A stretch of DNA of 64,000 nucleotides, from positions 124,001 through 188,000 of IMG/VR virus record IMGVR_UViG_3300042308_001511; one strand, written 5' to 3'. The notes beneath the pieces were generated by a model. It searched no databases, was not told the DNA's origin, and worked only from the letters and a program-made list of their open reading frames with translations. Every line of letters starts with the position of its first letter. Within the stretch, counting starts at the first letter, position 1. Of this stretch, positions 7,143-62,162 are shown piece by piece. Made by a program: the position numbers and the translations under genes.

Positions 7143-7173
7143 TTCATACAATATATATTATAATATATAACCT

Positions 7174-7599
7174 ATGATTAAGAAATTTGAAAATTTTGAT
7201 TTTTTACCAACGAAAAGACTTTTCCTGGACGATTGGAGAATTCCTAGAGATTGTGCAACTTATATGTGGCAGAGAAAGGTTGATTGTAGAATATTCCACG
7301 AAGAGTGGGATGTCGTAAGATCATATGGTCAGTTCGTTGCTTGGATTGAAAGTAATGGTATACCTGACGTGGTTAGTTTCGATTATGATCTCGATGATGT
7401 AGAGGAATTGAAAGAGGATCTTCCGATTGAAGAGTGGTTCAACATAGAAGAAAACTATTCGTATAAAGGTACTGACTGTCTGAGATATCTAATACGTAAA
7501 TGTCGAGAAGTAGGTAGTGTATTACCAAAATGTATAATACATTCTGCCAATCCAGACGGTTGTGATGAACTTAAACAACTAATTGACGCAAACATATAA
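7174..7599 (+). CDS. Cyclic-phosphate-processing receiver-like (cREC) domain protein with N-terminal tag
   Basis: LFLDDWRIP, WDVVRSY, VSFDYDL, IHSANPDG; starts MIKKFENF. Confidence 0.7.
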   Translation: MIKKFENFDFLPTKRLFLDDWRIPRDCATYMWQRKVDCRIFHEEWDVVRSYGQFVAWIESNGIPDVVSFDYDLDDVEELKEDLPIEEWFNIEENYSYKGTDCLRYLIRKCREVGSVLPKCIIHSANPDGCDELKQLIDANI

Positions 7600-7813
7600 G
7601 AAAGATATGAGAAAGTTTTTGGTATTTGAGACAGAAAATGATCGTAAGAAAGTCGAGGTCACAAATTCATTTATATTTGAGTCGGAGTCGGAGATAAACC
7701 GGTTCAATAGCACCGGAGAGATATCAGATAGTGAGACAGGTCTTGCACTACTTGACAAGTTCCCGGTCTACATCGCAATGGTTAGACACATTCACATAAC
7801 CTTCGAGAAATGA
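7583..7813 (+). CDS. Hypothetical protein
   Basis: 76-aa ORF within the operon; true start may be the internal ATG (MRKFLV). Confidence 0.5.
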   Translation: MTQTYKKDMRKFLVFETENDRKKVEVTNSFIFESESEINRFNSTGEISDSETGLALLDKFPVYIAMVRHIHITFEK

Positions 7814-7977
7814 AAGACTACACACCTAGAGACCTTGAATACTTCACAGAGAAGCTCTGGTCCTCTGTAGGAATACCAGAAAGATACCTCGATGGAACGA
7901 AAAACGCAGATATGTTAGAGAGAATCTTAAAAAAGAGGAAAAGGATTAGTCGTATAAAGAGTTTGTGGAAAATATAA
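7810..7977 (+). CDS. 55-aa mini-protein: portal (gp20)-like fragment plus C-terminal tag
   Basis: Below the ORF-track cutoff; MKDYTPRDLEYFTEKLWSSVGIPERYLDGTKNADMLERILKKRKRISRIKSLWKI; ATGA overlap with the upstream gene. Confidence 0.55.
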   Translation: MKDYTPRDLEYFTEKLWSSVGIPERYLDGTKNADMLERILKKRKRISRIKSLWKI

Positions 7978-8010
7978 GCAAACTTTTGATAAGTATTTCA
8001 TATATCTTTT

Positions 8011-8184
8011 ATGAGTAAATTGAAGTTGGCAACATTGTGGATTTTCATTATTGGATTTTCAACGTCTTTATTTTGTCTGATGTTATCTGATAAAAATGAT
8101 ATTGCAGGGTGGTTTTTGGCTAGTTTCTATTCATTTATATGTGTCTATTATGCCACAAAAGAACTAACAAATAATAAAAAATGA
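8011..8184 (+). CDS. Small two-TM membrane protein
   Basis: 57 aa, MSKLKLATLWIFIIGFSTSLFCLML..; ATGA overlap with 8181. Confidence 0.5.
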   Translation: MSKLKLATLWIFIIGFSTSLFCLMLSDKNDIAGWFLASFYSFICVYYATKELTNNKK

Positions 8185-8492
8185 TTAAACACGAGATAAA
8201 AGTAGAGATGAAGGATTCAGTATCCTTACGCAATCTTATAGAATCTGCATATAATATGAACGGAGAAGAAGGAACTATAATTGGTAATGAACACAGATTA
8301 TTGGTAAATCCAGTTTTGGATGATGAACTTTTTCGTGTGCTTACTGGATTACATAATAGTACAGTAAAGGTTTTCAACACAGAAGTTATTGATGGAACTA
8401 TTAGATTTATGGTTTCTGAAAAATCAGGCGAAATAAATCTTTCACCAATATCTGTACGTTGTATATGTGAAGATAGATGGATATTTTATTAA
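8181..8492 (+). CDS. Hypothetical protein
   Basis: 103-aa ORF. Confidence 0.6.
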   Translation: MIKHEIKVEMKDSVSLRNLIESAYNMNGEEGTIIGNEHRLLVNPVLDDELFRVLTGLHNSTVKVFNTEVIDGTIRFMVSEKSGEINLSPISVRCICEDRWIFY

Positions 8493-8515
8493 TAAATATA
8501 TCTAAAATGTAAGTG

Positions 8516-10413: not shown

Positions 10414-10520
10414 AATTTTTATATATAAAAAAAGCCATTCCATCCGTGGCAGTGAAAAAAATAAAATAAGTAAAAACAAACCGCGTAAATTTTTATAAAT
10501 AACATAAATCTAAATAAGAA

Positions 10521-11480: not shown

Positions 11481-11485
11481 TAATT

Positions 11486-11509
11486 AGGGACTAAAAAGTC
11501 CCTTTTTTT
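11486..11509 (+). terminator. Intrinsic terminator
   Basis: agggact-aaaa-agtccct followed by a T-tract. Confidence 0.65.
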
Positions 11510-11517
11510 ATATAAAA

Positions 11518-14003: not shown

Positions 14004-15902
14004 CTACTTCTCATTTACGTCTTCGAAGTCTACATCTTCTACCGTGCCATCACTGGTTGGTTGATCATTTGTATTTGTGTTTTCGTTTGTACTCTCTTGA
14101 TACAATCTTGTACTGATTGGTCCCCAAGTTTCGTTCAACGCTTCAATAGAACTATCAATTGCCGCAACATCTGCATCTGCGTGAGCTTTCTTAAGAATAT
14201 CTAACTTTTCGTTGATTGCATTTGTATCTTCTGTAGTTAGTTTTTCAGAAAACTCTTTGATTTGTTTTTCTGTTTGGAAAATCATACTATCTGCAGCATT
14301 TAGTTTTTCAACCTTCTCTTTTTCGAGTCTGTCTGCTTCCGCGTTAGCTTCTGCGTCTGCTTTCATTTTCTCAATCTCTTCTTTAGAAAGTTGCGATCCA
14401 CCCTCAATTCTGATAGAGTTTTGTTTACTAGTTGCTTTGTCTTTAGCAGAAACTGAAAGTATGCCATTTGCATCTATGTCAAAGGTTACTTCTATCTGCG
14501 GGATTCCTCTAGGTGATGGCATAATTCCATCGAGGTTGAATCTTCCGAGTGATCTGTTGTCTTTGGCCATTGCTCTCTCACCTTGTAAAACGTGTAACTC
14601 TACTGATGGTTGATTATCTGCCGCAGTTGAGAAAGTCTCACTTTTCTTTGTAGGGATTGTAGTATTTGCTTCAATCAACTTTGTGAAAACTCCACCCATT
14701 GTTTCGATTCCTAATGATAGTGGTGTTACGTCTAATAATAACACATCTGTAATACCACCTGTCAATACAGCACCTTGAATTGCAGCACCCAATGCCACAA
14801 CTTCGTCTGGATTTACTGAACGGTTAGGTTTTTTACCTACATATTGTTCGATTGCATCCTGAATTGCAGGAATTCTAGTAGAACCACCCACCAAAATTAC
14901 TTCATCGATATCTGATGGTTTCAAGCCTGCGTTTTTAAGTGCAGATTTTGCACATCCGATTGCTCTGTCCACAAGTTTTGCGGTCATTTGTTCGAACTTT
15001 GCTTTAGTTAATTTCTTCACAAAGTGTAAAGGAAGTCCGTCTTTTGCAGTGATATATGGAAGGTTGATTTCAGACTCAGAAGTAGATGAAAGTTCAATTT
15101 TTGCTTTCTCCGCAGCATCCTTCAACCTTTGAAGTGCCATAGGATCTTTTGATAAATCCATTGAGTTCTCTGATTTGAACTCAGTTATCATCCAATCAAT
15201 AATTGCGTTATCAAAGTCATCACCTCCTAAGTGAGTATCACCATCAGTAGATTTTACTTCAAAAACACCATCACCAATTTCCAATACCGAAACATCGTGT
15301 GTACCACCACCGCAGTCAAATACTAATATTTTAGATTCATTGTCTTTTTTGTCTAAACCATATGCAAGTGCTGCTGCTGTAGGTTCGTTGATAATTCTTT
15401 CTACTTTCAAACCAGCAATCTCACCTGCTTCAATAGTAGCAGTTCTTTCTGCATCACCAAAGTATGCAGGAACTGTAATAACTGCTCGGGTAACTTCGTA
15501 TCCTAAATAGTCTTCTGCGGTTTTTTTCATTTTTTGTAGAATCATCGCAGAAATCTCTTGTGGTGTGTATTCACGTCCATCAATGTTAACAACCGGAACA
15601 TTACTAGCAGATTTCTTTACTTCATAAGGAACTCTTCCAACTTCGTCGGTACAAACAGAGTGGTCTTTTCCGATGAATCTCTTAATTGAGTAGATTGTGT
15701 TTTTTGGGTTTGTTACTGCCTGTCTTTTTGCAGGGTCTCCAATTTTTCTATCGTTGTTAGAGAAAGATACGATTGATGGTGTCGTTCTTCTACCCTCTGC
15801 GTTGGAGATTACTACTGGCTCCCCGCCTTCTACCACTGCGACGCACGAGTTTGTTGTCCCGAGGTCAATTCCGATGATTACATCTTTTTTACTCATAGTC
15901 AT
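14004..15902 (-). CDS. dnaK: Chaperone DnaK (Hsp70)
   Basis: [32 protein letters not shown], acidic VEDVDFED tail. Confidence 0.98.
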
Positions 15903-16085: not shown

Positions 16086-17006
16086 ATGGGAAGCTTTTAC
16101 CTTACGTGCTCGATTTCGCACATGACTCTAACAAATCAAAAGACCAGTGTCCAACTTTTGATACCGAAGATGGACTACAAAGGAAACACCGAACTCAAAG
16201 AGCACAAAAACCTTATATGTACCAATGACGGTGCACAAGCATTCTTCTCGCCTTTCGGATTTCCAATCAAAGGAGAATACTATGACTATGGATACATCGA
16301 CGAGATTCAGAGAGATAAGAATGTTGAACAACTCGAAGAGTTCTTTGGTGGTAGTATAGATGATATAATCAAACACATTGGTAGAAAACGCGACTGGACA
16401 CCACCGAAGAACGAGCAGATTTACGAGCAACTACACATGACCTTTTTCCGTACAGAGGTACTCGAGTTTCTGGAGAGGGGATGGGACACAATAAATCTGA
16501 CCGACCCGTATGATTACTCGGGCGACGCCTACCTTAAGAAGTTCATAGAACTCGTTACAAAAGCACCGACCATGTTGCAGAAAGCGGAGGTTATCGAGAA
16601 GAGGTCAAAAGGTGAGGAGCTGACAGAGGACGAGTATGAAATTATGTTCCACTCGGAATACGAAGTCTTCGGATCGAGCAACTGTTACATAAAGTCCACG
16701 ATGGACAGGAACTTCTTGAAACTGCTCGGGGTGGACATAGAGGTGCAGTTAAACGACGTACTGAAACAGTCTACTTTCTTGACAAGATTTGGATGGGGGT
16801 TAGACAGGATACTTCTACCTTCGGTCTATGGATCACAGGAAACCAACTTCACGGAGACGTACTTACTGAACGACTTCGTCAACGACCTACTAGTACAGGA
16901 TATGGAAAACGAATACGATGACTATGACGAAGATGGTAACTCCGAGAAAGAGAGGATAATCAAATCACATAACAGGAACAAATCACTAAGAGAATTAGGA
17001 ATATGA
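16086..17006 (+). CDS. Hypothetical protein with C-terminal tag
   Basis: 306 aa, ends RNKSLRELGI. Confidence 0.7.
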   Translation: MGSFYLTCSISHMTLTNQKTSVQLLIPKMDYKGNTELKEHKNLICTNDGAQAFFSPFGFPIKGEYYDYGYIDEIQRDKNVEQLEEFFGGSIDDIIKHIGRKRDWTPPKNEQIYEQLHMTFFRTEVLEFLERGWDTINLTDPYDYSGDAYLKKFIELVTKAPTMLQKAEVIEKRSKGEELTEDEYEIMFHSEYEVFGSSNCYIKSTMDRNFLKLLGVDIEVQLNDVLKQSTFLTRFGWGLDRILLPSVYGSQETNFTETYLLNDFVNDLLVQDMENEYDDYDEDGNSEKERIIKSHNRNKSLRELGI

Positions 17007-18321: not shown

Positions 18322-18867
18322 CTATTTAGTCTCTATATCGAGTTCTTCGGTTTCTTCACCATCGACCTCTATTTTTAATTTTACTAACATATCCTCATCA
18401 ACCTCATCAATCTTTACAGTTTTTTTAGGTAGTTCTTTGATAAGTTGGTCTGCAGAGTTGTATCTTTTTATCTTGACTTTACAATTCTCTATGTCTTCGC
18501 TACCGAAGTCTTTTGTAAGGTCTTTCTGAACTGCATCCTTTAAGTCTATTGTGAATATTATAGAGTACCAGTTTTCTCCGTCATCGAGTCTGCATGAAAG
18601 TGTAGATGCAATCTTAGAAATTTCTGCATCAACCAGACTTGTTCCATAATCTGCAAAGGATATCTTCTTATCTGCTGCTGCTTTCTTTTCACCTTTACTT
18701 TTTGCCTGACTGAAACTTATAATTTCGTACTCTTCTGGTTCTTCACTATCTTCTGGAAAAATCTTCATTATTTTTTCCTTTATAGTCTTAAGTGCTTGTT
18801 CGGCATGGAACTCAGGAGTCTCATCCATTCCCTCTTTTAAATACTCTGTAAATTTTATTATCTTCAT
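18322..18867 (-). CDS. Acidic hypothetical protein with N-terminal tag
   Basis: Starts MKIIKFTEYLKE. Confidence 0.65.
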   Translation of the reverse strand: MKIIKFTEYLKEGMDETPEFHAEQALKTIKEKIMKIFPEDSEEPEEYEIISFSQAKSKGEKKAAADKKISFADYGTSLVDAEISKIASTLSCRLDDGENWYSIIFTIDLKDAVQKDLTKDFGSEDIENCKVKIKRYNSADQLIKELPKKTVKIDEVDEDMLVKLKIEVDGEETEELDIETK

Positions 18868-18888
18868 ATCTTATATATTATTCTTTTA

Positions 18889-19208: not shown

Positions 19209-19961
19209 TTATTTTTTGTAATATGGTTCTAAATAAATCTTTATCGCCTTGTTTATACTGGCATCCGAGGCTTCGAGATCTTCCACGTCAAGATCTTGTA
19301 AATCATTCTTTATTCTTTGTCTGACATCGCCCAAACTCATGTAAGTTAAGTTTACATTAGACTCATCTGAGAATAGTTTCAAAAACATTACGTTGTGTGA
19401 CTCTGATCCAAATGGTATATTAATGTTTTGGTCGACTATCGGATAAAGTGTTTTTAGTATGTTCAGAACTCTCTGTGTCTGCGTTGCTTCGGGTCCATTT
19501 GGGAGCTCCTGGAACGATGAAACTCTTTTCGGTAGTGAGAATGCCATCCTGATGGATATGAGTGCTTCTACGTCGTCTAATAACCTTTCCAGTTTTGTCT
19601 CTACATCTTCGTCTGATTTGAAGCTCACTGTCTTCTGATCAACCAGGTGCATATTTGCATTGTTCGCGAATGAATATTGTTTGGCGTATAGTATTACCGT
19701 GACGTAAGGTTTGAGACCGTCACCTTCGCAAAGTCTGATGATATTACACAATCTCTCTGTTACCTGTTCTACTTTTCCTTCGAGTAAACTGATGTGCTCG
19801 GACTTGTTCTCAAACGGTGTATCTGACATAATCTCAACATCAAGTCTTTCACCTTCAACATAAACGTTGGATGTGTACCCGTCAGGTAGATCATACATAA
19901 CCTCCTTTGTTGTATTCAGTATGTAGTCCATCCCACCAAAGCTCTCGAATCTCTTTATCAT
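19209..19961 (-). CDS. Hypothetical protein with N-terminal tag
   Basis: Starts MIKRFESF. Confidence 0.65.
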   Translation of the reverse strand: MIKRFESFGGMDYILNTTKEVMYDLPDGYTSNVYVEGERLDVEIMSDTPFENKSEHISLLEGKVEQVTERLCNIIRLCEGDGLKPYVTVILYAKQYSFANNANMHLVDQKTVSFKSDEDVETKLERLLDDVEALISIRMAFSLPKRVSSFQELPNGPEATQTQRVLNILKTLYPIVDQNINIPFGSESHNVMFLKLFSDESNVNLTYMSLGDVRQRIKNDLQDLDVEDLEASDASINKAIKIYLEPYYKK

Positions 19962-20020
19962 GTTGTATATATTAAAAAGTTTTAGTATATTTCTGGGAAA
20001 GGAAGTGATATGGGTGTGTA

Positions 20021-20058: not shown

Positions 20059-20760
20059 TTAGTTAGTAGAAAATTTCATAGTATTTGTAAAATAATCTTT
20101 ATTCTTACTTACCCAACCAGTTTCATTTAATTCATCTACCCATTGTTGTAGAGTAATCATTTTCATTGGATTTTTAAAAGAAACCAAATCTTCTTGTGGA
20201 ACTTCTGAAATATCTTCATCTATAATTATTTCTGAATCATCAATCGGATTCCATTTTTGTTGTGGAATAGAATACTGACTATTCTTCATAGTTAGTACAG
20301 GAACATCTTTTGTTAAATCAAATTCATAATCTGATTTCTTAACACTAGAACCAGGTTTCAAACCGATTGTGAAATTATTCACAATATCATCTTTTGCCAT
20401 AATAGATAGCCAAGAAATTGTATCCGGAACTTGTAGAGTTTTAGCTTTCTCGTCTGTTAACTCAACCAATACTTCAGAATTTTGCAAAAGCACAATTTTC
20501 GCTAACCCTGGAGTATATTGTAAGTAATCTATTGGGTTACTCATTTCTTCTTTACCTGGATTAGCACCACCAAGATAATGTATGTTATACAAATTACCCT
20601 TTGGTTGTATTGCATTTTTAGTTAAAAATTCTTGCATAACTTTACCTTTTTCGGATTTACCTTTAACTAAAGTTTCTATTTTTTTAAAAATATTTTCATT
20701 TATGCCAAGTATCCATTTCTTGTCATCTATGAATTTTTCGTACAATTTTATGTTCTTCAT
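20059..20760 (-). CDS. Hypothetical protein with N-terminal tag
   Basis: Starts MKNIKLYEKF. Confidence 0.65.
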   Translation of the reverse strand: MKNIKLYEKFIDDKKWILGINENIFKKIETLVKGKSEKGKVMQEFLTKNAIQPKGNLYNIHYLGGANPGKEEMSNPIDYLQYTPGLAKIVLLQNSEVLVELTDEKAKTLQVPDTISWLSIMAKDDIVNNFTIGLKPGSSVKKSDYEFDLTKDVPVLTMKNSQYSIPQQKWNPIDDSEIIIDEDISEVPQEDLVSFKNPMKMITLQQWVDELNETGWVSKNKDYFTNTMKFSTN

Positions 20761-20881
20761 AAGTATTTTATTTTTCGTATATATTATATTTCACTGTCAA
20801 AAAACGTATATTTGTAGATATTTCGAATATTATTTTTTTTGTATATTCTATTTCTGAAACTAAAATCGTATATTTGTTAAT

Positions 20882-22010: not shown

Positions 22011-22517
22011 ATGAAATTATTTGACATATTCAAAAAGAAGAAGCCTGTACAGCAGGAGACTATTCCGAACAAAAAGAAGAAACTGGTGCTCGACAAGGAG
22101 ATGGATTTTCCTGAGTTAGAGAAGTTCGACGAAGATAGATATCTAGCAGACACCTTCGAAGATGTGTTCCGGGCGATACGTTACGACGGTTGGAAGCGCG
22201 AGTTCACGAGTTACGGCGAGATGCACTTCTCGAAGGATCGCGTCCAGGTGAAGATACACTTCTCGGACTGGAGGACGTTCTACATAAAGAGGATCGAGTT
22301 ATATTCCGGATACACTACCTTCATATACAAGGACGAACTGGACGTGGACCACTATAATATGTTCTACGAGATCTACCGTGACTTCGTCATTAAACAGAAC
22401 GAGGTAAAGAAGAATAACATTGAGAAGAGTATGGCACAGATACGCAACGCACTGGGTAAGGACGTACTAAGGGACAGTAAGATTGATATGCTACTGAACT
22501 CGGATGATGTTGAATAG
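22011..22517 (+). CDS. Hypothetical protein with C-terminal tag
   Basis: Ends RDSKIDMLLNSDDVE. Confidence 0.65.
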   Translation: MKLFDIFKKKKPVQQETIPNKKKKLVLDKEMDFPELEKFDEDRYLADTFEDVFRAIRYDGWKREFTSYGEMHFSKDRVQVKIHFSDWRTFYIKRIELYSGYTTFIYKDELDVDHYNMFYEIYRDFVIKQNEVKKNNIEKSMAQIRNALGKDVLRDSKIDMLLNSDDVE

Positions 22518-26264: not shown

Positions 26265-26486
26265 ATGATTTATATTTATAAACCACGTAGTGAATGGCAC
26301 AGAAGATTTGATTTAACTGAAAATAAATCATATGACTGTGAATGGAATGGTCAAATGGTTTATTCATCTGATGGTATTTACTTTAAGTTGATTAGTGATT
26401 TAGACAAAGAGATTGAGGTTCATGAAAGTCATTTCATACCACTTGATAAATTTCGAGAAAATAAATTAAAAGAAATAGGGAAATGA
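26265..26486 (+). CDS. Small hypothetical protein with C-terminal tag
   Basis: Ends RENKLKEIGK. Confidence 0.6.
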   Translation: MIYIYKPRSEWHRRFDLTENKSYDCEWNGQMVYSSDGIYFKLISDLDKEIEVHESHFIPLDKFRENKLKEIGK

Positions 26487-26525: not shown

Positions 26526-26756
26526 CTATAGTCCTATATCACGAAACCTTTTTTCCCTAATACGTTCTATAAATTCTGCCTTAGTCTCCAAATTTATCTG
26601 TTCGGTATTGTAGAAGCCACCTTTAGTTGATGTTATACTATATAGATGACCGACGGTATCAATATTTGCCTCGCCTACTATACCAATCCAGTTAGTAGGT
26701 CCATATGGTGAGTTATATGTAAATGTGGCACCAATTGGCCAGTCATCTGGCATCAT
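26526..26756 (-). CDS. Small hypothetical protein with C-terminal tag
   Basis: Ends REKRFRDIGL. Confidence 0.6.
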   Translation of the reverse strand: MMPDDWPIGATFTYNSPYGPTNWIGIVGEANIDTVGHLYSITSTKGGFYNTEQINLETKAEFIERIREKRFRDIGL

Positions 26757-32300: not shown

Positions 32301-32402
32301 TTATATTGTATGTTTTTCACTTATATAGAAAAAAAAGTATAGCTTGTTTCAATACTGGTCTTATGTTGTGTCGTGTAGTACTTAAAAATTTATATATAGT
32401 GT

Positions 32403-40865: not shown

Positions 40866-40907
40866 ACAGACTATATATAAAAGAACCGAAAGCCGATATA
40901 TACAAGC

Positions 40908-42592: not shown

Positions 42593-42621
42593 TAATATAT
42601 ACAAAAAACTTTTATATTGAG

Positions 42622-42882
42622 ATGAAACACTTAAATTCGTACAAAACCTTCGAGAATATGGAAAGAGATAGTATGCAAAGAGACATTTGCGACAGATGTG
42701 AGCAACCTCCTATAAATAATACTACAATAATGAGTAAGTTCAACACGCAAGTAATCTGTATGCCGTGCAAAAAAAAAGAGATGAAACACACTAAATACGA
42801 AGACGCGTGTAAAGCAGAAAAGCAAGCAAATGATAAAGGTGATTATAACTTCAAAGGGATAGGAAAGCCAGATGATTTATAA
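42622..42882 (+). CDS. Small CxxC..CxxC zinc-binding protein with N-terminal tag
   Basis: CDRC..ICMPC; starts MKHLNSYKTFE. Confidence 0.6.
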   Translation: MKHLNSYKTFENMERDSMQRDICDRCEQPPINNTTIMSKFNTQVICMPCKKKEMKHTKYEDACKAEKQANDKGDYNFKGIGKPDDL

Positions 42883-43424
42883 TGAGATACATTAAGCTTT
42901 ACGAAGAGTTCGGACACGACGAGATTTACGACGTGATGATGTCCATATGCGATACTGTCTCTTTTAAAGAGTCGGATGTTTACCCTTCCACCGAAAGTAT
43001 CAGGGTCTACGAGACATCTGAACCCGTAGAGTTCGATCCTAATCAATATGAGGAATACCTGGAGGGTTGGACTATCAGACGCTTCATAATTGCTAATTGG
43101 GTTGTAATAGGCGGTAAAAATATTATTGCTTTCATAAAGGGAGACTATAAAGAGGCTAGTATATCCTGGTTGAAAGAAGTATATGGGAATCTAAAACCAA
43201 AGGAGCAAGATGGTAATATCTATTATAGAGATGGTGAAAGCGAACCTTTATTTTACTATTACAAATACAACACCGGGTACTACTACGTCAACCATAAAAG
43301 AATTTGGTCACTTTTTGAATATTTCGGTCTAAAAAAAGATGAAATAAGGAAATTGATAAGTGTTTGGCTTAGAGATATCTATAATTTAAGTGAACTCGCA
43401 CCTGATCCAAAATATTATATGTAG
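42882..43424 (+). CDS. N-tagged hypothetical protein, paralogue of 34435..35025
   Basis: Starts MRYIKLYEEF. Confidence 0.7.
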   Translation: MRYIKLYEEFGHDEIYDVMMSICDTVSFKESDVYPSTESIRVYETSEPVEFDPNQYEEYLEGWTIRRFIIANWVVIGGKNIIAFIKGDYKEASISWLKEVYGNLKPKEQDGNIYYRDGESEPLFYYYKYNTGYYYVNHKRIWSLFEYFGLKKDEIRKLISVWLRDIYNLSELAPDPKYYM

Positions 43425-47077: not shown

Positions 47078-47299
47078 TTGGAAGAAATTGAGTTTGAGGC
47101 GATATGCGTCAGGACATACTTCTGTGAGAAGATGGGAGGAACAGTAAGGTTCAAAAGGGGTGACCGTGTGAGATACAAAAAGTTTGGTAACTTCGTTATA
47201 ATAGACGGGTGTCTGGACGTGTTCAAAACACAGTTCGAGAGGTACTTCAAAGACGTGTCGGATTTGAGAGAGGAAAGGATTAACGAGATACTTGATTGA
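47078..47299 (+). CDS. Small protein with C-terminal tag
   Basis: Ends REERINEILD. Confidence 0.6.
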   Translation: MEEIEFEAICVRTYFCEKMGGTVRFKRGDRVRYKKFGNFVIIDGCLDVFKTQFERYFKDVSDLREERINEILD

Positions 47300-47973: not shown

Positions 47974-48738
47974 ATGGAAGGAACTGGTAAACTCAGAATG
48001 AGTGATAGCTACATATTCGGCTGGAATAGCAGAATATATGAGGCACCCAAGGATATGAACGTTATGGTATCTGCTGTTTACACGAACGGTACTGGTATAG
48101 ATGTGAAAATAAGACCGAATATCAGTAATGGTATGATAACGCCATCGATGGGTGAAACAACCGATGAGGTTCTTTTGGACCCACCGGTGAAATACAAAAT
48201 TGTGTTCTCGGTGTCGAAGGATTGTATAGAAGAGTTCGACGAGATAATGAATATGTTGTTGGAACGAAATTTCGACAACGAGGTCTGGAAGAATTCAAAA
48301 AAGAAAGAGACTGTGGTTACTACTAAATCAGTGGTAAAGACTCAGACGGATCACAGGATAGGTAAGGTCGATTATGTACGTTACGAGTGGAAAATGATTG
48401 GATCTCTTTCTGAGGTTATGGCACTATGTTATATTATAGAGAGTTCGGTTGATATATTTGGTAAGTGCTGGGGTGTGACCGAGGATGGTGAGAAGGTTTG
48501 TCAGATGAAGTATCCGATTGGAAGTATTGTATGTGTGGATAACGACAAGTCTACCGATTTCCTGGTATTGGATTGGCACTTCGACCTGTTGAGTCCAAAT
48601 TTCCATCATAGTTATGATGTGGTTTCCATAGTTGAGAAACCGGGTTCAGCGGTTGTTGGTTATGACAGGAGACAGATTGTGAATGAGAGTAGAATTTCGT
48701 GGTCGAGGAACAGTAGAATTGATGACATATTAGAATGA
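47974..48738 (+). CDS. Hypothetical protein with C-terminal tag
   Basis: Ends RNSRIDDILE. Confidence 0.65.
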   Translation: MEGTGKLRMSDSYIFGWNSRIYEAPKDMNVMVSAVYTNGTGIDVKIRPNISNGMITPSMGETTDEVLLDPPVKYKIVFSVSKDCIEEFDEIMNMLLERNFDNEVWKNSKKKETVVTTKSVVKTQTDHRIGKVDYVRYEWKMIGSLSEVMALCYIIESSVDIFGKCWGVTEDGEKVCQMKYPIGSIVCVDNDKSTDFLVLDWHFDLLSPNFHHSYDVVSIVEKPGSAVVGYDRRQIVNESRISWSRNSRIDDILE

Positions 48739-48950
48739 GTATCTACGATAGCTACGATGCTAATAAACTTAGTTGGTCTAAATTGACTGAGGAGGTGTTC
48801 TATAACGGCGTTCCGTTGGGTATGACGATGGAACAACTGGCAGACTATAAGGTTATGACCGGCGGTGGAAACATATTGACTATAATAATGGATAGGTATT
48901 ATGAGGTTTTACCGGATTGGCGTAATGGTAGGCTTGACGAGATACTTTAA
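48735..48950 (+). CDS. Small protein with C-terminal tag
   Basis: Ends RNGRLDEIL. Confidence 0.6.
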   Translation: MSIYDSYDANKLSWSKLTEEVFYNGVPLGMTMEQLADYKVMTGGGNILTIIMDRYYEVLPDWRNGRLDEIL

Positions 48951-48961
48951 TTTTACTATAT

Positions 48962-49465
48962 TTGCTTATGAGGAAGTGGAACGATTTTGAGTTGACCGAC
49001 TATCTCCGTGAAGAGAGGATGAACTGCTATTATTTCTGGTCCAAAGGAAAGATAACTAGGAAAAAATCTCACGAAGGAATATACGAACAGAACCTAGCTG
49101 GAACCTGTGAGTGGAACGGCATCAGACTCAAAAACGGGTTCAACATAATATTCAACAGATTCTTAATAAAATATACTATGGAAGGAAAATGGAACGGCCA
49201 AAGTAAAGCTGAATATTTGAAAAATTATAAAAGAATAGAAGATATCATCTCTAAATCAGATGGTGATGTTGATAAACAAGAGAAACTTGCAAAATTACAA
49301 GCCAATAAAATAAAAGATGAATGGAAAGCCATAAACCGAGCAATTGCAGCAAAAGATATGGATTATGAAAATATCTTTGAAATTTTCTTCCAAAGAGCCT
49401 ACGAATTAGGATCCGTATCAAAACAGGAATATAGAGAATACCAAATGGATAAACTGGGTATATGA
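48962..49465 (+). CDS. Hypothetical protein with C-terminal tag (start uncertain)
   Basis: Ends REYQMDKLGI. Confidence 0.55.
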   Translation: MLMRKWNDFELTDYLREERMNCYYFWSKGKITRKKSHEGIYEQNLAGTCEWNGIRLKNGFNIIFNRFLIKYTMEGKWNGQSKAEYLKNYKRIEDIISKSDGDVDKQEKLAKLQANKIKDEWKAINRAIAAKDMDYENIFEIFFQRAYELGSVSKQEYREYQMDKLGI

Positions 49466-51207: not shown

Positions 51208-51603
51208 ATGAAGAAACTTTTTCTGGATGACATTAGGTCACCAAAAGATGCAATCGGTTTAGTACCTTCACATATGAACCAGTTCTACTGGGCCAATGAC
51301 TGGGACGTAGTTCGTAGTCACGACGAGTTTGTTGATTGGATCGTAACGAATGGTGTTCCTGACTTTGTTAGTTTTGACCACGACTTAGCAGATGAGCACT
51401 ACATCGACTTTATGGGTTTGTCTGATGGTAAAGAGAAAACTGAAACAACTGAGAAAACTGGATACGAGTCTGCAAAATGGCTTGTTTACCACTGTCTCGA
51501 TAAAGGTGTCGGTTTACCCGAATACCAAGTTCACTCGGCAAATCCAGTTGGTAAAGCAAACATACAGGGTTATTTAGAGAATGCGAAAAAACATCTACTC
51601 TGA
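51208..51603 (+). CDS. Cyclic-phosphate-processing receiver-like (cREC) domain protein, untagged copy
   Basis: LFLDDIRSP, WDVVRS, VSFDHDL, TGYESAKWL, VHSANPVG. Confidence 0.78.
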   Translation: MKKLFLDDIRSPKDAIGLVPSHMNQFYWANDWDVVRSHDEFVDWIVTNGVPDFVSFDHDLADEHYIDFMGLSDGKEKTETTEKTGYESAKWLVYHCLDKGVGLPEYQVHSANPVGKANIQGYLENAKKHLL

Positions 51604-56957: not shown

Positions 56958-57332
56958 CTATATAGAGACGTATGCGTCTATAAACTCTTCACCACTTTGG
57001 TATTTCACCAGAGTTCTGTTGTATCCGTCCATCACCTCTCCGTTTAGTATGACAATCGGGTTGTCTATCTCGTCGTAGTGTGGTACGTAATCCTCTTCCT
57101 CATATCTGTCCGCGTCATTCTCTACGTATTCTCTTAGGTCTGGATCACTTTCGAGAAGATCTTCTATTCTCATCTCTCTCAGTTCGAAGTCACGACCTTC
57201 TCTTTCTATCAACGTCAGGAAGTAGTCTGGGATTGTTGTCACCGGGTTGTCTGATACCTTCTTTATGTAATCGATTATCTCTTCTGAACTAAGTCTGTTC
57301 GAGCTATGTTCTAAAAATGTCATTATTCTCAT
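56958..57332 (-). CDS. ParB/sulfiredoxin-like domain protein with N-terminal tag
   Basis: PIVI..VMDGYNR; starts MRIMTFLE. Confidence 0.6.
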   Translation of the reverse strand: MRIMTFLEHSSNRLSSEEIIDYIKKVSDNPVTTIPDYFLTLIEREGRDFELREMRIEDLLESDPDLREYVENDADRYEEEDYVPHYDEIDNPIVILNGEVMDGYNRTLVKYQSGEEFIDAYVSI

Positions 57333-57390
57333 TACTTATATATTATTCCTGTTGTGCAACATATTAACATCTGTTCATATAATATTCTCT

Positions 57391-57891
57391 ATGAGTATTA
57401 TTATGACACACAACGCGATATTTATTGGTAAAGTAGATACTGATAACCAGAATGAGAGGTATAGTTTTTCGTGTAACCTCAGAATTGACGAGACTAACGG
57501 ACAGAGTACTGCGGTTATGATGAGGTCTTCAAATGAGGGTACTCTGAGGTTCAAAAATATAAAAGACAAAATTTCATCTCTTGGTAAATTAGAGAGGTTT
57601 GATATGGTGGTATTCACTTCTATCTGGTCGAAGACGACAGTTTGTGATGTTTATGCGATAGAGTTCGTTGACTATAAGAAAAAGGTCAGTATGAATGAGT
57701 TTAACGACCTTGGTTTAGGACCTAATATAGATGAGAGACTCGAGGTTAGGCTGAGTGGAGGTTGGACTATTGATGTCGGTAATCGTGATAAACTTGCTGG
57801 TATAGTGGTTGGTTTTGGCGAACCATTCCCATCTGAGAATGATTTGGCGGCAATCCGTCGTGAAATGAAGTTAGGTGGTCTTTTAGGTTAG
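57391..57891 (+). CDS. Hypothetical protein with C-terminal tag
   Basis: Ends REMKLGGLLG; start taken at the internal ATG (MSIIM). Confidence 0.6.
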   Translation: MSIIMTHNAIFIGKVDTDNQNERYSFSCNLRIDETNGQSTAVMMRSSNEGTLRFKNIKDKISSLGKLERFDMVVFTSIWSKTTVCDVYAIEFVDYKKKVSMNEFNDLGLGPNIDERLEVRLSGGWTIDVGNRDKLAGIVVGFGEPFPSENDLAAIRREMKLGGLLG

Positions 57892-58143
57892 TACCTTGAT
57901 TATATCATCTAAGTCTGTGTATCCTATGTTACCATCTTTGTCTCTTACCGTTATTTTTTTTTCCGCATCAATATCAATAGGTTCAATCTCATCTTTTTTG
58001 TTGTGATTTTTTAACCCTTCGATGTTACTTACAAAAATCTTATTTCCGTTTTCGATTGCCTTTTGTATATGTTCGGTAGTTATGAGGTCTCCCTCTCCGT
58101 TGTTTACAAAGGTCTCGTATTTCATTATTTTTTTATTTTTCAT
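57883..58143 (-). CDS. Small N-tagged protein
   Basis: Starts MKNKKIMKYETF. Confidence 0.6.
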   Translation of the reverse strand: MKNKKIMKYETFVNNGEGDLITTEHIQKAIENGNKIFVSNIEGLKNHNKKDEIEPIDIDAEKKITVRDKDGNIGYTDLDDIIKVLT

Positions 58144-58175
58144 TGTTTATATATTAAGATTGTAATATATAGTAT

Positions 58176-59504
58176 ATGAAACATTTGAGAAGATTTGACG
58201 AAGAGCTCAGCCCGGGTGTGTATAATAGAGCAGCCGAGGAAAAAGCAAAAATACACGGTGACGTGGAAGCTGCTAAGGCACTCAGGGACTGGGCCAAAAA
58301 ATCCGAGTCCGGTGGAAAGGGCTACGACATAGTGTATACTTGTGTAAGAGAGGGACGTCCTCTTTACACGGGGATTGAATACACCGCGAACATGGTGAAG
58401 CCGACGGTGGCCGGTGTATTCTTCGGATCGGTACTTGAATACCCGAAGAACAGAATTGGTGAGAACACAGCAGACTCTATACTGTCTGATTGGAAATCGA
58501 ACGGCAGGTCGCTCTCGGTCAGCATGGTCGTGAACTTCGAGAAGACCGAAGTCGTGGACAGGTCGTGGACCTACGAGGTTACAATCATCGGTAGCAAGAT
58601 TGGTGAGGCAAATGACCAGGTACAAACTTTCAAGATAGAAAAGGAACAGGAGCACTCGGCATTGATTGCACTCGGCCAGGCTATAAAGGCTGCCTACCCT
58701 AAAATCATCGGTAGTCCGCTTAGGAGCGACGCGGTGAGGTGGAAGATTGTGAAAGGACCGACGCTCGGCGTCGTAAAGGGTGGTGAGATGATGAATAAGA
58801 TAAGCGGTGTAGGTTGGCACAATAAGTTCAAAGACTATACGAGCACGCTCTCGACCTTCGTCATCGAGGTTAGGCTTTCCCGCTCGACCTATGGTATGAA
58901 CGACCAGTATGCATGCCATGCGTGTGGAGGTGCAGTCACAATGGATTGTTACGACTGTGATGGTGAGGGCTCGGTATGGAGTGATGATGCAGACGACAAT
59001 GTAACGTGTACGACCTGTAACGGAACAGGCACAATCACATGCGAGGAGTGCGACGGCGAGGATATGGTGGCAAAAGTATCTCCGTTCAAGTTTTTCGAAG
59101 ACACTTTCTATCCTGAGGTCACGATGAGACCTATACCCGGCAATCTGACCTACAACAGGGACGAGACTTATTCGCAGTACCCTTGGATTGGTATGTTCAT
59201 GGCCAGGGACGACGCGAGGAGGTTCCTGAGCGACAACTGGGAGAGGCTCATAAACGAGGATACTAGATCGAAGTTCGGTAAAAACGGAGGCGTAGGATCT
59301 TTCTACGAAGCAATAACAGACCTCGTGAAGGAGGCGGTCGACGTGAACGACAATAAGGCGATGGATTATATGCAGGAGGCGATTGTCGCGGTGGAGAACA
59401 TCAGTGTTGCAGCGATGGTACAGGACAAGGATGCCAAGTTGGCCGTGGAATCCGCCAATAGAAATTTCAGGAACATATCGACTTACAGACCGAAAAACAA
59501 ATAG
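58176..59504 (+). CDS. N-tagged protein with a DnaJ-type zinc finger
   Basis: MKHLRRFDEEL; CHACGG, CYDCDGEG, CTTCNGTG, CEECDG. Confidence 0.7.
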   Translation: MKHLRRFDEELSPGVYNRAAEEKAKIHGDVEAAKALRDWAKKSESGGKGYDIVYTCVREGRPLYTGIEYTANMVKPTVAGVFFGSVLEYPKNRIGENTADSILSDWKSNGRSLSVSMVVNFEKTEVVDRSWTYEVTIIGSKIGEANDQVQTFKIEKEQEHSALIALGQAIKAAYPKIIGSPLRSDAVRWKIVKGPTLGVVKGGEMMNKISGVGWHNKFKDYTSTLSTFVIEVRLSRSTYGMNDQYACHACGGAVTMDCYDCDGEGSVWSDDADDNVTCTTCNGTGTITCEECDGEDMVAKVSPFKFFEDTFYPEVTMRPIPGNLTYNRDETYSQYPWIGMFMARDDARRFLSDNWERLINEDTRSKFGKNGGVGSFYEAITDLVKEAVDVNDNKAMDYMQEAIVAVENISVAAMVQDKDAKLAVESANRNFRNISTYRPKNK

Positions 59505-59507
59505 ATT

Positions 59508-60428
59508 ATGAAATACCTAAGAAGATACAACGAAGAACTTGAACCAAGTACCTATAGAAAGGCTGCGGATAAACTAATAAAAAGGGGTAGATACCACAGA
59601 AAAAGAGGCCAGGATATGCAAGAATACGCGTCTCTTGTCGATTGGAGAAGACTAAGAGACAGATGCAAGCGTGCCGGAATACTAACGCTTAGACTCGAGA
59701 CAAGTGTGAAACCTCCAAGCGGTCAGGCAACCCCGGACTACGTTGGAGAGTTCCACCCTGTTGTCGAACTTGGACTCGATATGTTTTCGGATGAGTTGCA
59801 CGCAAGGGATTTAAATAGTGTAAACACTCCGCCGGAGAATCCAGTAAAGGGTGATAGTTATTTAGTTGGTAGAGAGCCAACTGGTGCTTGGTCTGAAAAG
59901 GCTGGTTATATGGCAGAATGGGACCGTAATCAATGGGTATTTACGTCACCACACTTTGTGATACCACTACATTGGTTCGTAAGTGCGGTTCCGACAACGG
60001 AGGAAGGCTATGAGCAAGCACACGCTGCTGCCAAGAAGAAGGTTGAGTGGCACAGAGCCAGGGGACCATACGATAAGAACTATGGGTTTCCCCTGGCCTT
60101 CTTTCACTTTGACATCATCTTCTCGGGTGGTAGCTACGAATTCGGTACGTCTCAGTTTTACTCCAGAGACGATTTGCAAGTGGATGCACACTTAGAAGAC
60201 AGGTCTGGATCAGGAAGGATCAGGTCAGAGATACTCTGGCAACTGGATGAGAAGTGTGGTGAATCATATAGTTGCCACGTTGGTGGTAAAAAACACGATT
60301 TTTCAAATCCAATCGAAGCGTTTAACGGTCTACTTCAATACTATGGTCTCTCTTCGGACTACGGACTTGAGTCAAAGGCAGTCTACGATTATGTGAAGAA
60401 GATACCAGGTAATTTTTTCACATGTTAA
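59508..60428 (+). CDS. N-tagged protein with a DUF2793-like insert
   Basis: MKYLRRYNEEL; TPPENPVKGDSYLVGREPTGAW..W..QWVFTSP. Confidence 0.65.
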   Translation: MKYLRRYNEELEPSTYRKAADKLIKRGRYHRKRGQDMQEYASLVDWRRLRDRCKRAGILTLRLETSVKPPSGQATPDYVGEFHPVVELGLDMFSDELHARDLNSVNTPPENPVKGDSYLVGREPTGAWSEKAGYMAEWDRNQWVFTSPHFVIPLHWFVSAVPTTEEGYEQAHAAAKKKVEWHRARGPYDKNYGFPLAFFHFDIIFSGGSYEFGTSQFYSRDDLQVDAHLEDRSGSGRIRSEILWQLDEKCGESYSCHVGGKKHDFSNPIEAFNGLLQYYGLSSDYGLESKAVYDYVKKIPGNFFTC

Positions 60429-60496
60429 AATGAGAGGCCAAATGGCCTCTTTTCTTTTGTTGAAATTTACTACATTAGCATAACGATATATAAAAC

Positions 60497-61672
60497 ATGA
60501 AAAAGAAGATAATGAGTTATGATGTTTTCTTGGAGAATAAATCCACGGAAATGCCATTACCACAAGACGTTCTCGATATAGCTGCGGCATATACTGCAGC
60601 TGGGAAGGAGATATACGTTGTTGGTGGTGCAGTTCGAGACTTCCGAAAGGGTGTTGAACCAAAAGACTATGATTTGGTAACTAATGCACTACCGGAGGAG
60701 TCCAAACAGATACTAAAAGGTTTCTGTGTTTCTGATGAACAGGGTAAGAATTTTGGAGTACTTAGAGTATACACTGAATCGGAACCAGAAGGTTACGAGA
60801 TTGCTTCTTTTAGAAGAGATATCGCCAAAGGAAGAGACACAAAGGGTGAAGACCAAAAGGTTGATATGGGTCCTGATGTTACCATTGAAGATGACGTTAT
60901 GAGACGTGACCTTACTATGAATGCATTATTCTATGATATTGCTAAGAAAGAGATAGTCGACTTAGTTGGTGGTATGGATGATATAAGTGGTAACCAGATT
61001 AGAGCTGTTGGTGATGCATCACAGAGGTTCGTTGAGGATAGATTGAGGATAATGAGAGTGATAAGATTCGCTGCTAGAACGAATGGTATTATTGAAGAAA
61101 AAACCGCGGATGCTATTAGAAAAGATAACAGATTAAGAGACGTAGGGCCAACTGATGATGTATCTCAGGAAAGAATCTGGGAAGAGATGATGAAGGCTTG
61201 GAAACAAGCCAAAGATTATACACAATACCTTTCTTACTTCAAAGAGTTTGATATGTGGAGTCAAGTTTTTCCAGGTGTTAAAGTTTCTGATCCGGTAAAT
61301 AGTGCTGACTTTTCGGTAGTTATTGCATCTCTTCTAAGAGATAATCCTTCTGATTATCTTGATAAAAAACTCGTTCAGGATTTCAGGATTGATACATCAT
61401 TAGCAAAAAAGATTGTTTTTCTTGTTTCACTTAGAGATTTTGATGCTGAGAAGGTACTTGACTACTGGAAGAAAAGACAGTCTTCTGGTATATCTGATCA
61501 GACAATATTAGAGTGGTTAACGAAAACTGCGGTTGAACGACAAGATGTTATTAAGTTTGTGGATTGGAAACCTTCTGTAAAGTCAGAGGAACTCATAAAT
61601 AAAGGCTTCGCTGGTAAAGCATTGGGTGAGGAGATTAGAAGGTTAGAGGTAGAGAATTTCAAAGGTAAATAG
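60497..61672 (+). CDS. Class II tRNA nucleotidyltransferase (CCA-adding / poly(A) polymerase family), N-tagged
   Basis: VGGAVRD, KDYD, RRDLTMNA, RFVEDRLR, VSQERIW. Confidence 0.88.
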   Translation: MKKKIMSYDVFLENKSTEMPLPQDVLDIAAAYTAAGKEIYVVGGAVRDFRKGVEPKDYDLVTNALPEESKQILKGFCVSDEQGKNFGVLRVYTESEPEGYEIASFRRDIAKGRDTKGEDQKVDMGPDVTIEDDVMRRDLTMNALFYDIAKKEIVDLVGGMDDISGNQIRAVGDASQRFVEDRLRIMRVIRFAARTNGIIEEKTADAIRKDNRLRDVGPTDDVSQERIWEEMMKAWKQAKDYTQYLSYFKEFDMWSQVFPGVKVSDPVNSADFSVVIASLLRDNPSDYLDKKLVQDFRIDTSLAKKIVFLVSLRDFDAEKVLDYWKKRQSSGISDQTILEWLTKTAVERQDVIKFVDWKPSVKSEELINKGFAGKALGEEIRRLEVENFKGK

Positions 61673-61685
61673 AATATATACGAAC

Positions 61686-62162
61686 ATGAGTATAAAGAAA
61701 TATGATGGATTCAGAGAATCAGTTGACTACACGTTGGCTCTGATAAATGCAGAAGCTGATATTGATAAATATCAAACACCACAATTGAATACCGTTGATG
61801 ATAAATACAACGAAGAATTTGTAAAATATCTATGGGAAATTGCAGAAATAAGACGTATCGACTCGATTGGTGGTACTGAGGCAGAGCCTGGTATGAGAAG
61901 GTATTGTATCGATGGTAAGGTAGACTTTGAGGACGTGGTACATATGGCACCAACTGCTATTGCTTGTGGAATAAAGGTCTGTAAGTATCCGATGGGTTCC
62001 TATATGGAATACCAGACGTGGCCTGGTGGATACATTGAAGGTTTTATAAGAATGGATAGTGATGATCCAAGATTTGGTGAGTATATTGTTTGGACTTATA
62101 TAAAGATGGATAAACTAAGAGACATAATTGAGAAATTTGAAAATAAAATAAAACTTTTTTAA
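61686..62162 (+). CDS. N-tagged hypothetical protein
   Basis: Starts MSIKKYDGFRE. Confidence 0.6.
   Translation: MSIKKYDGFRESVDYTLALINAEADIDKYQTPQLNTVDDKYNEEFVKYLWEIAEIRRIDSIGGTEAEPGMRRYCIDGKVDFEDVVHMAPTAIACGIKVCKYPMGSYMEYQTWPGGYIEGFIRMDSDDPRFGEYIVWTYIKMDKLRDIIEKFENKIKLF

Follow-up and report, generated by a model that had tools for sequence, protein, structure and literature searches.

A candidate T4-type capsid-targeting peptide on many late proteins of very large freshwater phages

In bacteriophage T4, the capsid-targeting sequence (CTS) of the internal proteins IPI, IPII and IPIII reportedly reads MKTYQEFIAE (Mullaney & Black 1996). Incorporation of IPIII into the head needs only its first 10 residues, targeting being conveyed mainly by residues 4 and 7 and processing by residues 8 and 10 (PMC9026906). 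The T4 internal head proteins all join the scaffold core via such a sequence, after which gp21 cuts at sites such as ITE, LTE or LIE (PMC5694885). A short peptide of similar design begins many proteins encoded by the stretch of DNA analysed here, hereafter the window, which comprises the 64,000 nucleotides (nt) at bases 124,001-188,000 of the 344,083-bp IMG/VR virus contig IMGVR_UViG_3300042308_001511 (~36% G+C). On a slight balance of probability, this N-terminal tag would be a T4-type capsid-targeting propeptide which, in the Mahaphage clade of very large freshwater phages, has spread by multiplication to 13-14% of all proteins.

Dozens of proteins are also loaded into the heads of the giant phages phiKZ and SPN3US, whose head and ejection propeptides are processed by a family S80 protease cleaving at S/A/G-x-Glu. 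The clade studied here appears to share with them a Glu-specific prohead protease of the same clan, its members matching Peptidase_S80, and C-terminal autoprocessing of this protease is plausible in the clade too. However, the phiKZ and SPN3US propeptides are long (up to >100 residues) and lack a short consensus (PMC5694885), whereas a fixed 10-residue consensus is reused here, and the head genes of the clade (Gp23, Portal_T4) are closer to those of T4. A more remote likeness, drawn from general knowledge, is to encapsulin cargo-loading peptides and to the encapsulation peptides of bacterial microcompartments, short terminal amphipathic labels which load unrelated enzymes into a protein shell; these shells are different ones, DNA is not involved and the peptides are not removed by a maturation protease. 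Literature searches turned up no publication in which a CTS, a shared N-terminal motif or an ATATATA promoter is reported for huge phages or megaphages.

The tag lies at the extreme N-terminus and follows the ten-residue consensus M-[KR]-[YH]-[LI]-[KR]-x-[FY]-[EN]-x-F. Its canonical form, which accounts for ~70% of tags, has Met at position 1, K/R at 2, Y/H at 3, L/I at 4, K/R at 5, any residue at 6, F/Y at 7, E/N/K at 8, any residue at 9 and F at 10; among canonical tags, all (100%) have L/I/V/M as residue 4 and ~97% have F/Y as residue 7. Shorter variants (e.g. MIKKFENF) have the aromatic residue at position 5 or 6; the aromatic anchor is residue 7 in 43 of the 64 tags of this genome and in 98 of the 129 found in LR745206, a related uncultured huge phage which was analysed whole (909 genes). 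These counts were obtained with a position-specific scoring matrix (PSSM) built from curated tags of the present genome and a cut-off score of at least 8. Genes having been called with a simple codon-model caller (482 on the contig, 86 in the window), 64 of the 482 are tagged, against 1.1 expected from internal windows and 5.8 +/- 2.4 (maximum 14) when real N-termini are shuffled column by column, a conservative null. The corresponding figures for LR745206 are 129 of 909 genes against 3.5 (internal windows) or 13.9 +/- 3.7 (column shuffle), and the share is thus 13-14% of all genes in both genomes.

An earlier sequence-only reading of the window had listed 17 such open reading frames (ORFs) and advised a genome-wide enrichment check, which bears it out. 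All 17 N-termini are found at the ORFs that it named, each with a PSSM score between 8.6 and 20.7, and at the cut-off only two marginal ORFs (7607-7813 and 22011-22517) join them in the window. The list was real and yet an underestimate of scale, the tag being a clade-wide feature. The pattern used in that reading was permissive, matching 26 of the 86 window genes and 94 of the 482 genome genes, against a rate of 4.6% at internal positions and an expectation of 33 +/- 5.7 from pooled, shuffled N-terminal residues. Chance or composition as the source of the tag is ruled out by three nulls.

Beyond the tag itself, a hydrophobic-x-Glu ending occurs within the first 14 residues of 77-78% of tagged and 19-24% of untagged proteins, and in LR745206 the residue following this Glu is S/A/N/G in about two-thirds of the sites. 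These endings are putative prohead-protease sites, at which cutting would occur after the Glu. The resemblance to T4 is close. The matrix, trained only on this phage, gives MKTYQEFIAE a score of 13.1, and among the 471 ATG-initiated ORFs of at least 45 amino acids (aa) in the T4 genome its top four are ipII (13.1), ipIII (13.1), 61.1 (12.6, MKTFKEFIKE) and ipI (12.1), the three ip genes being annotated as 'internal virion protein'. The remaining one, T4 gene 61.1 (NC_000866, 18966-19130(-)), encodes a hypothetical protein of 54 aa which scores level with the internal proteins and is a possible fourth CTS-bearing T4 protein.

Read against the T4 sequence, the invariant tag positions 4 and 7 are the targeting residues shown there by mutation. 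Both peptides stand at the extreme N-terminus of unrelated proteins, start with Met-Lys, have a hydrophobic or aromatic residue at position 4 and an aromatic one at position 7, and continue into hydrophobic-x-Glu; relatives of this phage moreover have a gp20/gp23/gp21-type head. The two systems also differ. In T4, 3-4 genes carry the sequence, compared with 64-129 per genome in the clade; the consensus is MK[YH][LI]K.[FY] here, with a frequent second aromatic residue at position 10, and MKT[YF].EF in T4. The tagged proteins are mostly small acidic ORFans, with enzymes of up to 574 aa among them, and many of their mRNAs look leaderless. The mechanism is probably the same as that of the T4 CTS. 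What was already known is a CTS on a handful of internal proteins in T4 and its close relatives; new here are the scale, the consensus, a protease fused to the scaffold and the apparently leaderless late mRNAs.

The tag behaves as a module. Without their first 15 residues, the 62 curated tagged proteins sort into 57 families that BLAST keeps apart. The clearest case is a pair of cREC paralogues in the window: in the tagged protein (MIKKFENF..., 141 aa, 7174-7599(+)) the Pfam cREC_REC domain spans aa 15-138, whereas in the untagged one (MKKLFLDD..., 51208-51603(+), E 6.5e-21) it begins at aa 3, which makes the tag a 12-residue add-on. Likewise, the PolyA_pol head domain of a tagged nucleotidyltransferase (60497-61672(+)) begins only at aa 39, behind the tag, and the kinase part of a tagged P-loop kinase with a HAD phosphatase, encoded outside the window, begins at about aa 26-33. 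Synonymous codons in tags and gene bodies are alike, with Phe TTC:TTT at 55:45 versus 54:46 and Leu spread over six codons; Glu GAA:GAG is 49:51 in the tag versus 60:40 in gene bodies. Orthologues in LR745206 which are only 24-61% identical overall retain the tag, 12 reciprocal-best-hit pairs being tagged on both sides. At the lower end of this range, the product of 59508-60428 and its LR745206 orthologue, 24% identical overall, start with MKYLRRYNEELEPSTYRK and MKYLRKFNEELKPQTYRR, respectively. In addition, 22 of the 64 tagged genes here and half of those in LR745206 (34-50%) are operon-internal and have no promoter of their own. Collectively, these patterns indicate that selection is on the peptide, not on the DNA.

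Tagged genes are tied to a recurrent ATATATA motif, whose extended consensus is TTTAATATATA. The motif lies within 60 nt upstream of 42 of the 64 tagged genes and 59 of the 418 untagged ones (odds ratio 11.6, p = 3e-17), and upstream of 65 of 129 tagged versus 181 of 780 untagged genes in LR745206. Counted by operon, 89-91% of tagged genes belong to units with an ATATATA promoter, compared with 43-46% of the genes which have neither the tag nor a C-terminal motif described below. Within the window, 13 of the 17 listed ORFs have the motif at most 60 nt upstream (ten at 4-6 nt and three at 17-20 nt before the ATG), while 34435, 39350, 42882 and 59508, the remaining four, each come next in an ATATATA operon, as the sequence-only reading had described.

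The distance between motif and ATG is bimodal, either 4-6 nt or 16-30 nt with a gap at 7-15 nt, which suggests a fixed transcript start a few nt downstream of the motif. The shorter distance of 4-6 nt applies to 43 genes here and 100 in LR745206, and ~40% of the motifs located in front of a start codon show it, pointing to a large class of leaderless late mRNAs. This spacing is found in 26 of the 42 tagged genes with their own promoter here and in 40 of 65 in LR745206, as well as in 17 and 60 untagged genes, respectively.

In LR745206, the capsid, portal, protease-scaffold, terminase and sheath genes all have the motif upstream, as do the largest structural genes. On the contig, it precedes large virion-like genes and not those for DnaB, helicase, DNA polymerase, UvsX, RNR-small or Hsp70. 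Since it stands before structural and not replication genes, we infer with good support that ATATATA is a late promoter, in agreement with the proposal made from the window. The T4 late promoter, TATAAATA, depends on gp55, gp33 and gp45. Both promoters consist of a single AT-rich -10-like element with no -35, placed upstream of structural and tagged genes, and they differ in sequence, that of the clade being TTTAATATATA; the T4 CTS genes, moreover, have ordinary leaders with a ribosome-binding site. A gp55/gp33 homologue was not found by phmmer with all T4 ORFs, no dedicated search having been made, and such small proteins diverge quickly. The Bacteroidetes -7 motif TAnnTTTG did not usefully separate gene classes. 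As a side observation, the helicase and UvsX genes (genome 58357-60024(-) and 72101-73327(-)) have CTGTATAAT followed by an A-rich leader upstream, and such elements may belong to a separate class of promoters, middle or early, whose -10 is extended.

The phylogenetic setting of the tag was examined through the split topoisomerase II subunit of the contig, which is 73% identical to those of two uncultured huge phages, LR745206 (634,780 bp) and LR756502 (642 kb); LR756504, LR756500 and LR756501 (735 kb) are more distant by the same comparison. LR745206 and its relatives are Mahaphage genomes, and replication in Bacteroidetes has been predicted for all genomes >634 kb (Al-Shayeb et al., 2020; PMC7162821). 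DNA nearly identical to that of the contig was found across many lake, river and other freshwater metagenomes. In LR745206, the tag consensus is MK[YH][LI]K.[FY], followed by NES or K[IL]FES, and in 41-kb pieces of LR756504, LR756500 and LR756501 tags are present behind TAATATATA. An exact-pattern scan of IMG/VR for the promoter plus the tag retrieved at least 120 loci on contigs of up to 597 kb; among the matches listed (978 kb of loci), there are 316 tagged ORFs, 207 of which the search pattern did not itself require.

More distant T4-like jumbo contigs have one or two tagged genes each, adjoining the head module. In one of them, MKKYSEFISE, identical to the T4 CTS at 7 of 10 positions, begins a protein encoded two genes past the capsid gene, and another distant tag reads MQYIKTYEEFLNE. 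This distribution suggests that an old signal of T4 type, which many T4-like phages have in a few copies, underwent massive multiplication in one subclade. In an environmental 381-kb jumbo contig, a gene with an ADP-ribosyl-exotoxin-type domain (L208, 14461-14961) directly follows a tagged gene and the head module; it recalls the packaged ADP-ribosyltransferase Alt of T4, its true start codon being ambiguous.

If the tag addresses proteins to a prohead, the clade should have a head of T4 type, and in LR745206 it does: Portal_T4 (E 3e-57), the Gp23 capsid (E 7e-26) and a T4-type terminase (Terminase_6N) are present together with a gene for the tail sheath and further members of the T4 core set. 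The gene immediately upstream of Gp23 encodes a protease fused to a scaffold (198546-200669, 707 aa). The more distant tagged contigs have T4-type prohead genes as well, and in them too a protease-scaffold gene adjoins Gp23 upstream. In its protease domain (the first ~170 residues), Peptidase_S80 is matched with 24.9 bits against a cut-off of 23.4, Peptidase_S77 remaining below cut-off. The family is large (1601 clusters at 90% identity, 3045 representatives at 50%), and in a sample of 46 diverse relatives Peptidase_S80 was matched by 46 and S77 by 42, with a best E of 3e-16; His72, Ser127/128 and Asp149 are invariant in these relatives. An AlphaFold model of the domain built from a deep alignment (pLDDT 84) has T4 gp21 as its best PDB match (5JBL, E 3.5e-6), followed by the herpesvirus assemblins, while phmmer with the protease domain gave zero matches among PDB sequences. 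On the strength of the model and of the relatives, from which and not from this contig the evidence comes, the clade protease is a predicted S77/S80 serine protease of gp21 fold fused to the scaffold.

The protease domain ends, in a low-confidence linker, with an invariant Asn-Glu followed by Ser. This x-N-E|S has the same form as F-N-E|S, the commonest tag ending, and the invariant Asn-Glu is likely an autocleavage site. The scaffold part of the LR745206 protein contains ten perfect 14-residue repeats, NI[AS]YSEY[LI]AEN[LV]DK, which by eye resemble residues 4-10 of the T4 CTS (YQEFIAE), a resemblance to be taken as a lead only. In the cultured Tenacibaculum phage pT24 (235 kb), the protease-scaffold gene (112436-114019) is without repeats and the proteome without the tag expansion; with n = 2 the comparison is small, and repeat-free relatives are on contigs of 4-7 kb.

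From these elements, the following course of events may be proposed. Late in infection, tagged genes would be transcribed from TTTAATATATA, which they share with the capsid, portal, protease-scaffold, terminase and sheath genes, many of the mRNAs being leaderless. The first 10-14 residues would form a basic, aromatic and amphipathic peptide whose invariant positions, aliphatic at 4 and aromatic at 7, attach the protein to the prohead scaffold core, around which the shell then closes. The scaffold-fused gp21-type serine protease would cut after the Glu of hydrophobic-x-Glu at residues 8-12 and free the cargo, which could remain in the head with the DNA and enter the next cell. Docking, cleavage, virion retention and injection are the steps that we infer; the modular N-terminal add-on, the T4 CTS likeness, the late promoter and the T4-type head in the clade are the points on which these data support the sequence-only reading.

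Several observations weigh against this reading. Packaging is deduced from sequence and from the head genes of relatives, and the contig itself has no head genes, so that the link between tag and head assembly would rest on those relatives. Capsid, portal, protease and terminase genes were not found on the 344-kb contig with Pfam Gp23, Peptidase_S77, Terminase_6N and Phage_capsid or by tblastn with 28 LR745206 head-module proteins, and PHROGs searches with 20 large contig proteins gave replication enzymes and one tail-spike-like protein and zero head genes. The sole head-module neighbour on the contig (approximately genome 187557-188288, window 63557-64000 and beyond) is orthologous to the gene which immediately precedes that for the protease-scaffold in LR745206. 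As the closest relatives are 634-642 kb, nearly double its length, the contig is probably a fragment (about half) of a ~600-kb genome, or else rearranged; its CheckV completeness of 91% is doubtful because the head genes were not found on it.

Other adverse points concern the tag and its bearers. With 64-129 tagged proteins per genome, the clade exceeds every documented use of a CTS more than tenfold, and 22-23% of the tags have no hydrophobic-x-Glu within 14 residues. The tagged proteins are markedly acidic, with a median isoelectric point of 4.8 versus 5.5, whereas T4 IPII and IPIII are basic. Their residues 14-30 are barely more polar than those of untagged proteins and thus reveal no evident flexible linker. 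The tag matrix does not pick up the scaffold's own repeats, which thus offer no candidate docking partner. Phage pT24, with 2 tagged genes against 1.5 expected, and a piece of Lak-B8 lack the expansion, although pT24 and the Lak phage have the same protease-scaffold and capsid layout. The single metatranscriptome consulted held only low-depth contigs of relatives at 90-95%, in which transcript starts were not resolved.

In the alternative which best survives, the tag would serve in the handling or sorting of late proteins whose destination is not the capsid; it could be a handle for the Hsp70/DnaJ chaperones of the phage itself, an N-terminal degron for timed proteolysis or a short amphipathic helix for a membrane or assembly site. 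We consider it unlikely, although not negligible. Among the phage genes are one for a full-length Hsp70/DnaK (window 14004-15902(-), E 3e-249) and one for a DnaJ that is complete, having its J domain, zinc finger and C-terminal domain (genome 120659-121705(+)). On general grounds, basic plus hydrophobic segments like the tag are of the kind bound by DnaK, and the tag resembles the N-terminal Met-basic-hydrophobic class recognized by ClpX. The large number and acidity of the tagged proteins would also suit a general handling signal better than they suit DNA-associated internal proteins, and pT24 has the same head machinery without tags. A handling signal, however, gives no reason for the matrix to single out exactly the three internal-protein genes of T4, for the invariant positions to coincide with T4 targeting positions 4 and 7, for a Glu-type site to follow the tag or for single tagged genes to stand beside the head module in distant T4-like jumbo phages.

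Less probable still is that the tag does send proteins to the prohead core but that most of them serve as filling for the core or scaffold and, as happens to T4 gp22, gp67 and gp68, are broken down and expelled during maturation instead of being delivered as cargo. All internal head proteins of T4, including those later destroyed, associate with the core (PMC5694885), many tagged proteins are small acidic ORFans with no enzyme domain, and the very large heads of the clade may require much core mass. Against this, several tagged proteins are intact enzymes (the nucleotidyltransferase, cREC, kinase-HAD and GATase-like proteins) which there is no obvious reason to destroy, and tagged proteins are not enriched in scaffold-like multiple internal cleavage repeats.

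That the tagged genes form one hugely expanded paralogous family, the N-terminus being its slowest-evolving remnant with no address function, is very improbable. Clear paralogues with an extended shared N-terminal region do exist (four MRYIKLYEEF...MSICD genes and the pair 58176/59508), and tagged genes are frequently arranged in tandem arrays. A single family is nevertheless largely ruled out by the 57 BLAST families counted above, unrelated ancient folds being tagged (cREC, nucleotidyltransferase, P-loop kinase-HAD and GATase) whose untagged relatives begin at the domain, and the same peptide is found on T4 internal proteins. The least credible alternative, now largely refuted, holds that the conserved unit is DNA or RNA (an initially transcribed region, a leaderless translation element or a mobile promoter cassette with a passenger peptide), as the strong tag-promoter association and the many tag codons placed at the RNA 5' end by the 4-6 nt spacing might suggest, but it is rejected because tag codon use equals that of gene bodies, tags occur inside operons and untagged genes have the same promoter spacing, the T4 CTS genes with their ordinary leaders likewise speaking against it.

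Returning to the tag as a capsid-targeting propeptide, the nature of some cargo proteins is suggestive. The phage has an RNA-repair set composed of the two cREC proteins (7174-7599 and 51208-51603), the CCA/poly(A)-type nucleotidyltransferase (60497-61672), the P-loop kinase with its HAD (a Swiss-Army-Knife RNA-repair HAD) and an RNA ligase, the last two being encoded at genome 260756-261988 and 67885-69222. Three of these five proteins, namely a cREC protein, the nucleotidyltransferase and the kinase-HAD, are tagged and behind the late promoter. T4 Alt is made late, packaged and active at injection (PMC5694885). Expressing presumably early-needed repair enzymes from late promoters would make sense in a parallel way, if they are carried into the next cell.

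A wider and more tentative proposal, to which we give rather less than even weight, is that Mahaphages, the largest known phages with genomes of up to 735 kb, have turned the CTS into a general address system: 60-130 late proteins per genome, including a tRNA/RNA-repair kit, would be delivered with the DNA so that infection begins with a pre-made proteome and not by early transcription alone, and the C-terminal motif of ~80 other small proteins may add a further sorting code. If the tags do function as the T4 CTS does, sequence alone would reveal which proteins an uncultured huge phage injects; to our knowledge, this is possible today only by virion proteomics of cultured phages. It would also help to explain the large gene number of these phages, much of which may be first-strike cargo against host defences, for instance RNA repair against anticodon nucleases. 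It would, in addition, identify the clade's late promoter and suggest that leaderless late mRNAs are widespread in Bacteroidetes phages. T4 accepts foreign CTS cargo, and a portable 10-residue tag is thus testable at the bench without culturing the phage.

Individually, the tagged ORFs of the window are as follows, each promoter distance being that from the end of ATATATA to the ATG. The tagged cREC gene at 7174-7599 (PSSM 15.7) has the motif at 7163-7169, 4 nt away. Three genes on the minus strand come next: 18322-18867(-) (MKIIKFTEY..., 181 aa, no known family, PSSM 8.9, motif 18872-18878, 4 nt), whose LR745206 orthologue is tagged (MKIRKYIEF); 19209-19961(-) (MIKRFESF..., 250 aa, PSSM 17.1, motif 19966-19972, 4 nt), with zero Pfam matches; and 20059-20760(-) (MKNIKLYEKF..., 233 aa, PSSM 14.2, motif 20778-20784, 17 nt). 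The gene at 32403-33683(+) encodes a 426-aa protein (MKYLKRFLE..., PSSM 12.7, motif 32392-32398, 4 nt) whose C-terminal half is class-I glutamine amidotransferase-like (Pfam GATase at aa 219-386, E 7e-9) and whose LR745206 orthologue begins MKHIKRFLE. It is followed by 33699-34433(+) (MRYLKHFE..., 244 aa, PSSM 15.2, motif 33673-33679, 19 nt) and, with no promoter of its own, by 34435-35025(+) (MRYIKLYEEF..., 196 aa, PSSM 20.7), which belongs to the tagged family of four copies. Its paralogue at 42882-43424(+) (MRYIKLYEEF..., 180 aa, PSSM 20.5) is next in the operon of 42622-42882(+) (MKHLNSYKTFE..., 86 aa, PSSM 11.7, motif 42595-42601, 20 nt). Between these pairs, 39984-40865(-) (MRKLKVYENF..., 293 aa, PSSM 15.1, motif 40872-40878, 6 nt) is overlapped at its end by the operon-downstream 39350-40015(-) (MKYLKELKEF..., 221 aa), which has no promoter of its own and is the weakest of the 17 (PSSM 8.6).

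Towards the end of the window, 56958-57332(-) (MRIMTFLE..., 124 aa, PSSM 11.1, motif 57337-57343, 4 nt) is followed by 57883-58143(-) (MKNKKIMKYETF..., 86 aa, PSSM 14.7), whose motif (58148-58154, 4 nt) stands back to back with that of 58176-59504(+) (MKHLRRFDE..., 442 aa, PSSM 14.9, motif 58165-58171, 4 nt). The latter gene, with weak Pfam matches only, encodes a DnaJ-type CxxCxGxG zinc-finger stretch, as does the tagged gene at genome 265450-267174. Next in its operon is 59508-60428(+) (MKYLRRYNE..., 306 aa, DUF2793, PSSM 14.5). A local G+C peak (0.47 versus ~0.36, window 58000-60000) covers these two genes, and a long antisense ORF (58140-58919(-)) is probably spurious. The CCA/poly(A)-polymerase-type nucleotidyltransferase at 60497-61672 (MKKKIMSYDVFLE..., 391 aa, PSSM 13.5, PolyA_pol E 3e-28) has its motif at 60486-60492, 4 nt away, and 61686-62162(+) (MSIKKYDGFRE..., 158 aa, PSSM 13.4, motif 61674-61680, 5 nt) completes the set. 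Among the five enzyme labels given by the sequence-only reading, cREC, GATase-like and CCA/poly(A)-type nucleotidyltransferase are thus correct, whereas the ParB-like and kinase-like ones are unconfirmed, no window ORF having a ParB or kinase Pfam match at E <= 0.01. ESM Atlas searches with two tagged ORFans were uninformative.

The same reading had taken similar peptides at the C-terminus of three proteins as a sign that the signal may be position-flexible. The three peptides exist, IESYSEF alone reaching the threshold, but C-terminal matches are not enriched on the contig (5 versus 3.4 expected). LR745206 has a weak excess (14 versus 3.6). T4 Alt has a C-terminal propeptide (PMC5694885), which makes the idea of a C-terminal tag not absurd, though it is unsupported on this contig.

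A different motif was observed at the C-terminus, R-[EDN]-x-[KRQ]-[LI]-x-E-[LI]-G-I-stop, which ends 78 of the contig's 482 genes, where 0.2 would be expected, and 77 of the 909 genes of LR745206. None of the eight proteins examined that bear it has a Pfam family, and the motif is left unexplained; it may be a second sorting code, mutually exclusive with the tag. Synonymous codons vary within it, which suggests that the peptide is selected. The genes which bear it are never N-terminally tagged, are small (median 96 aa), are seldom behind ATATATA and form long same-strand arrays. Those in the window are located at 16086-17006(+), 26265-26486(+), 26526-26756(-), 26753-27394(-), 36527-36778(+), 47132-47299(+), 47974-48738(+), 48735-48950(+), 48968-49465(+) and 57391-57891(+), while genome-wide they lie mostly at 286-343 kb, on the minus strand.

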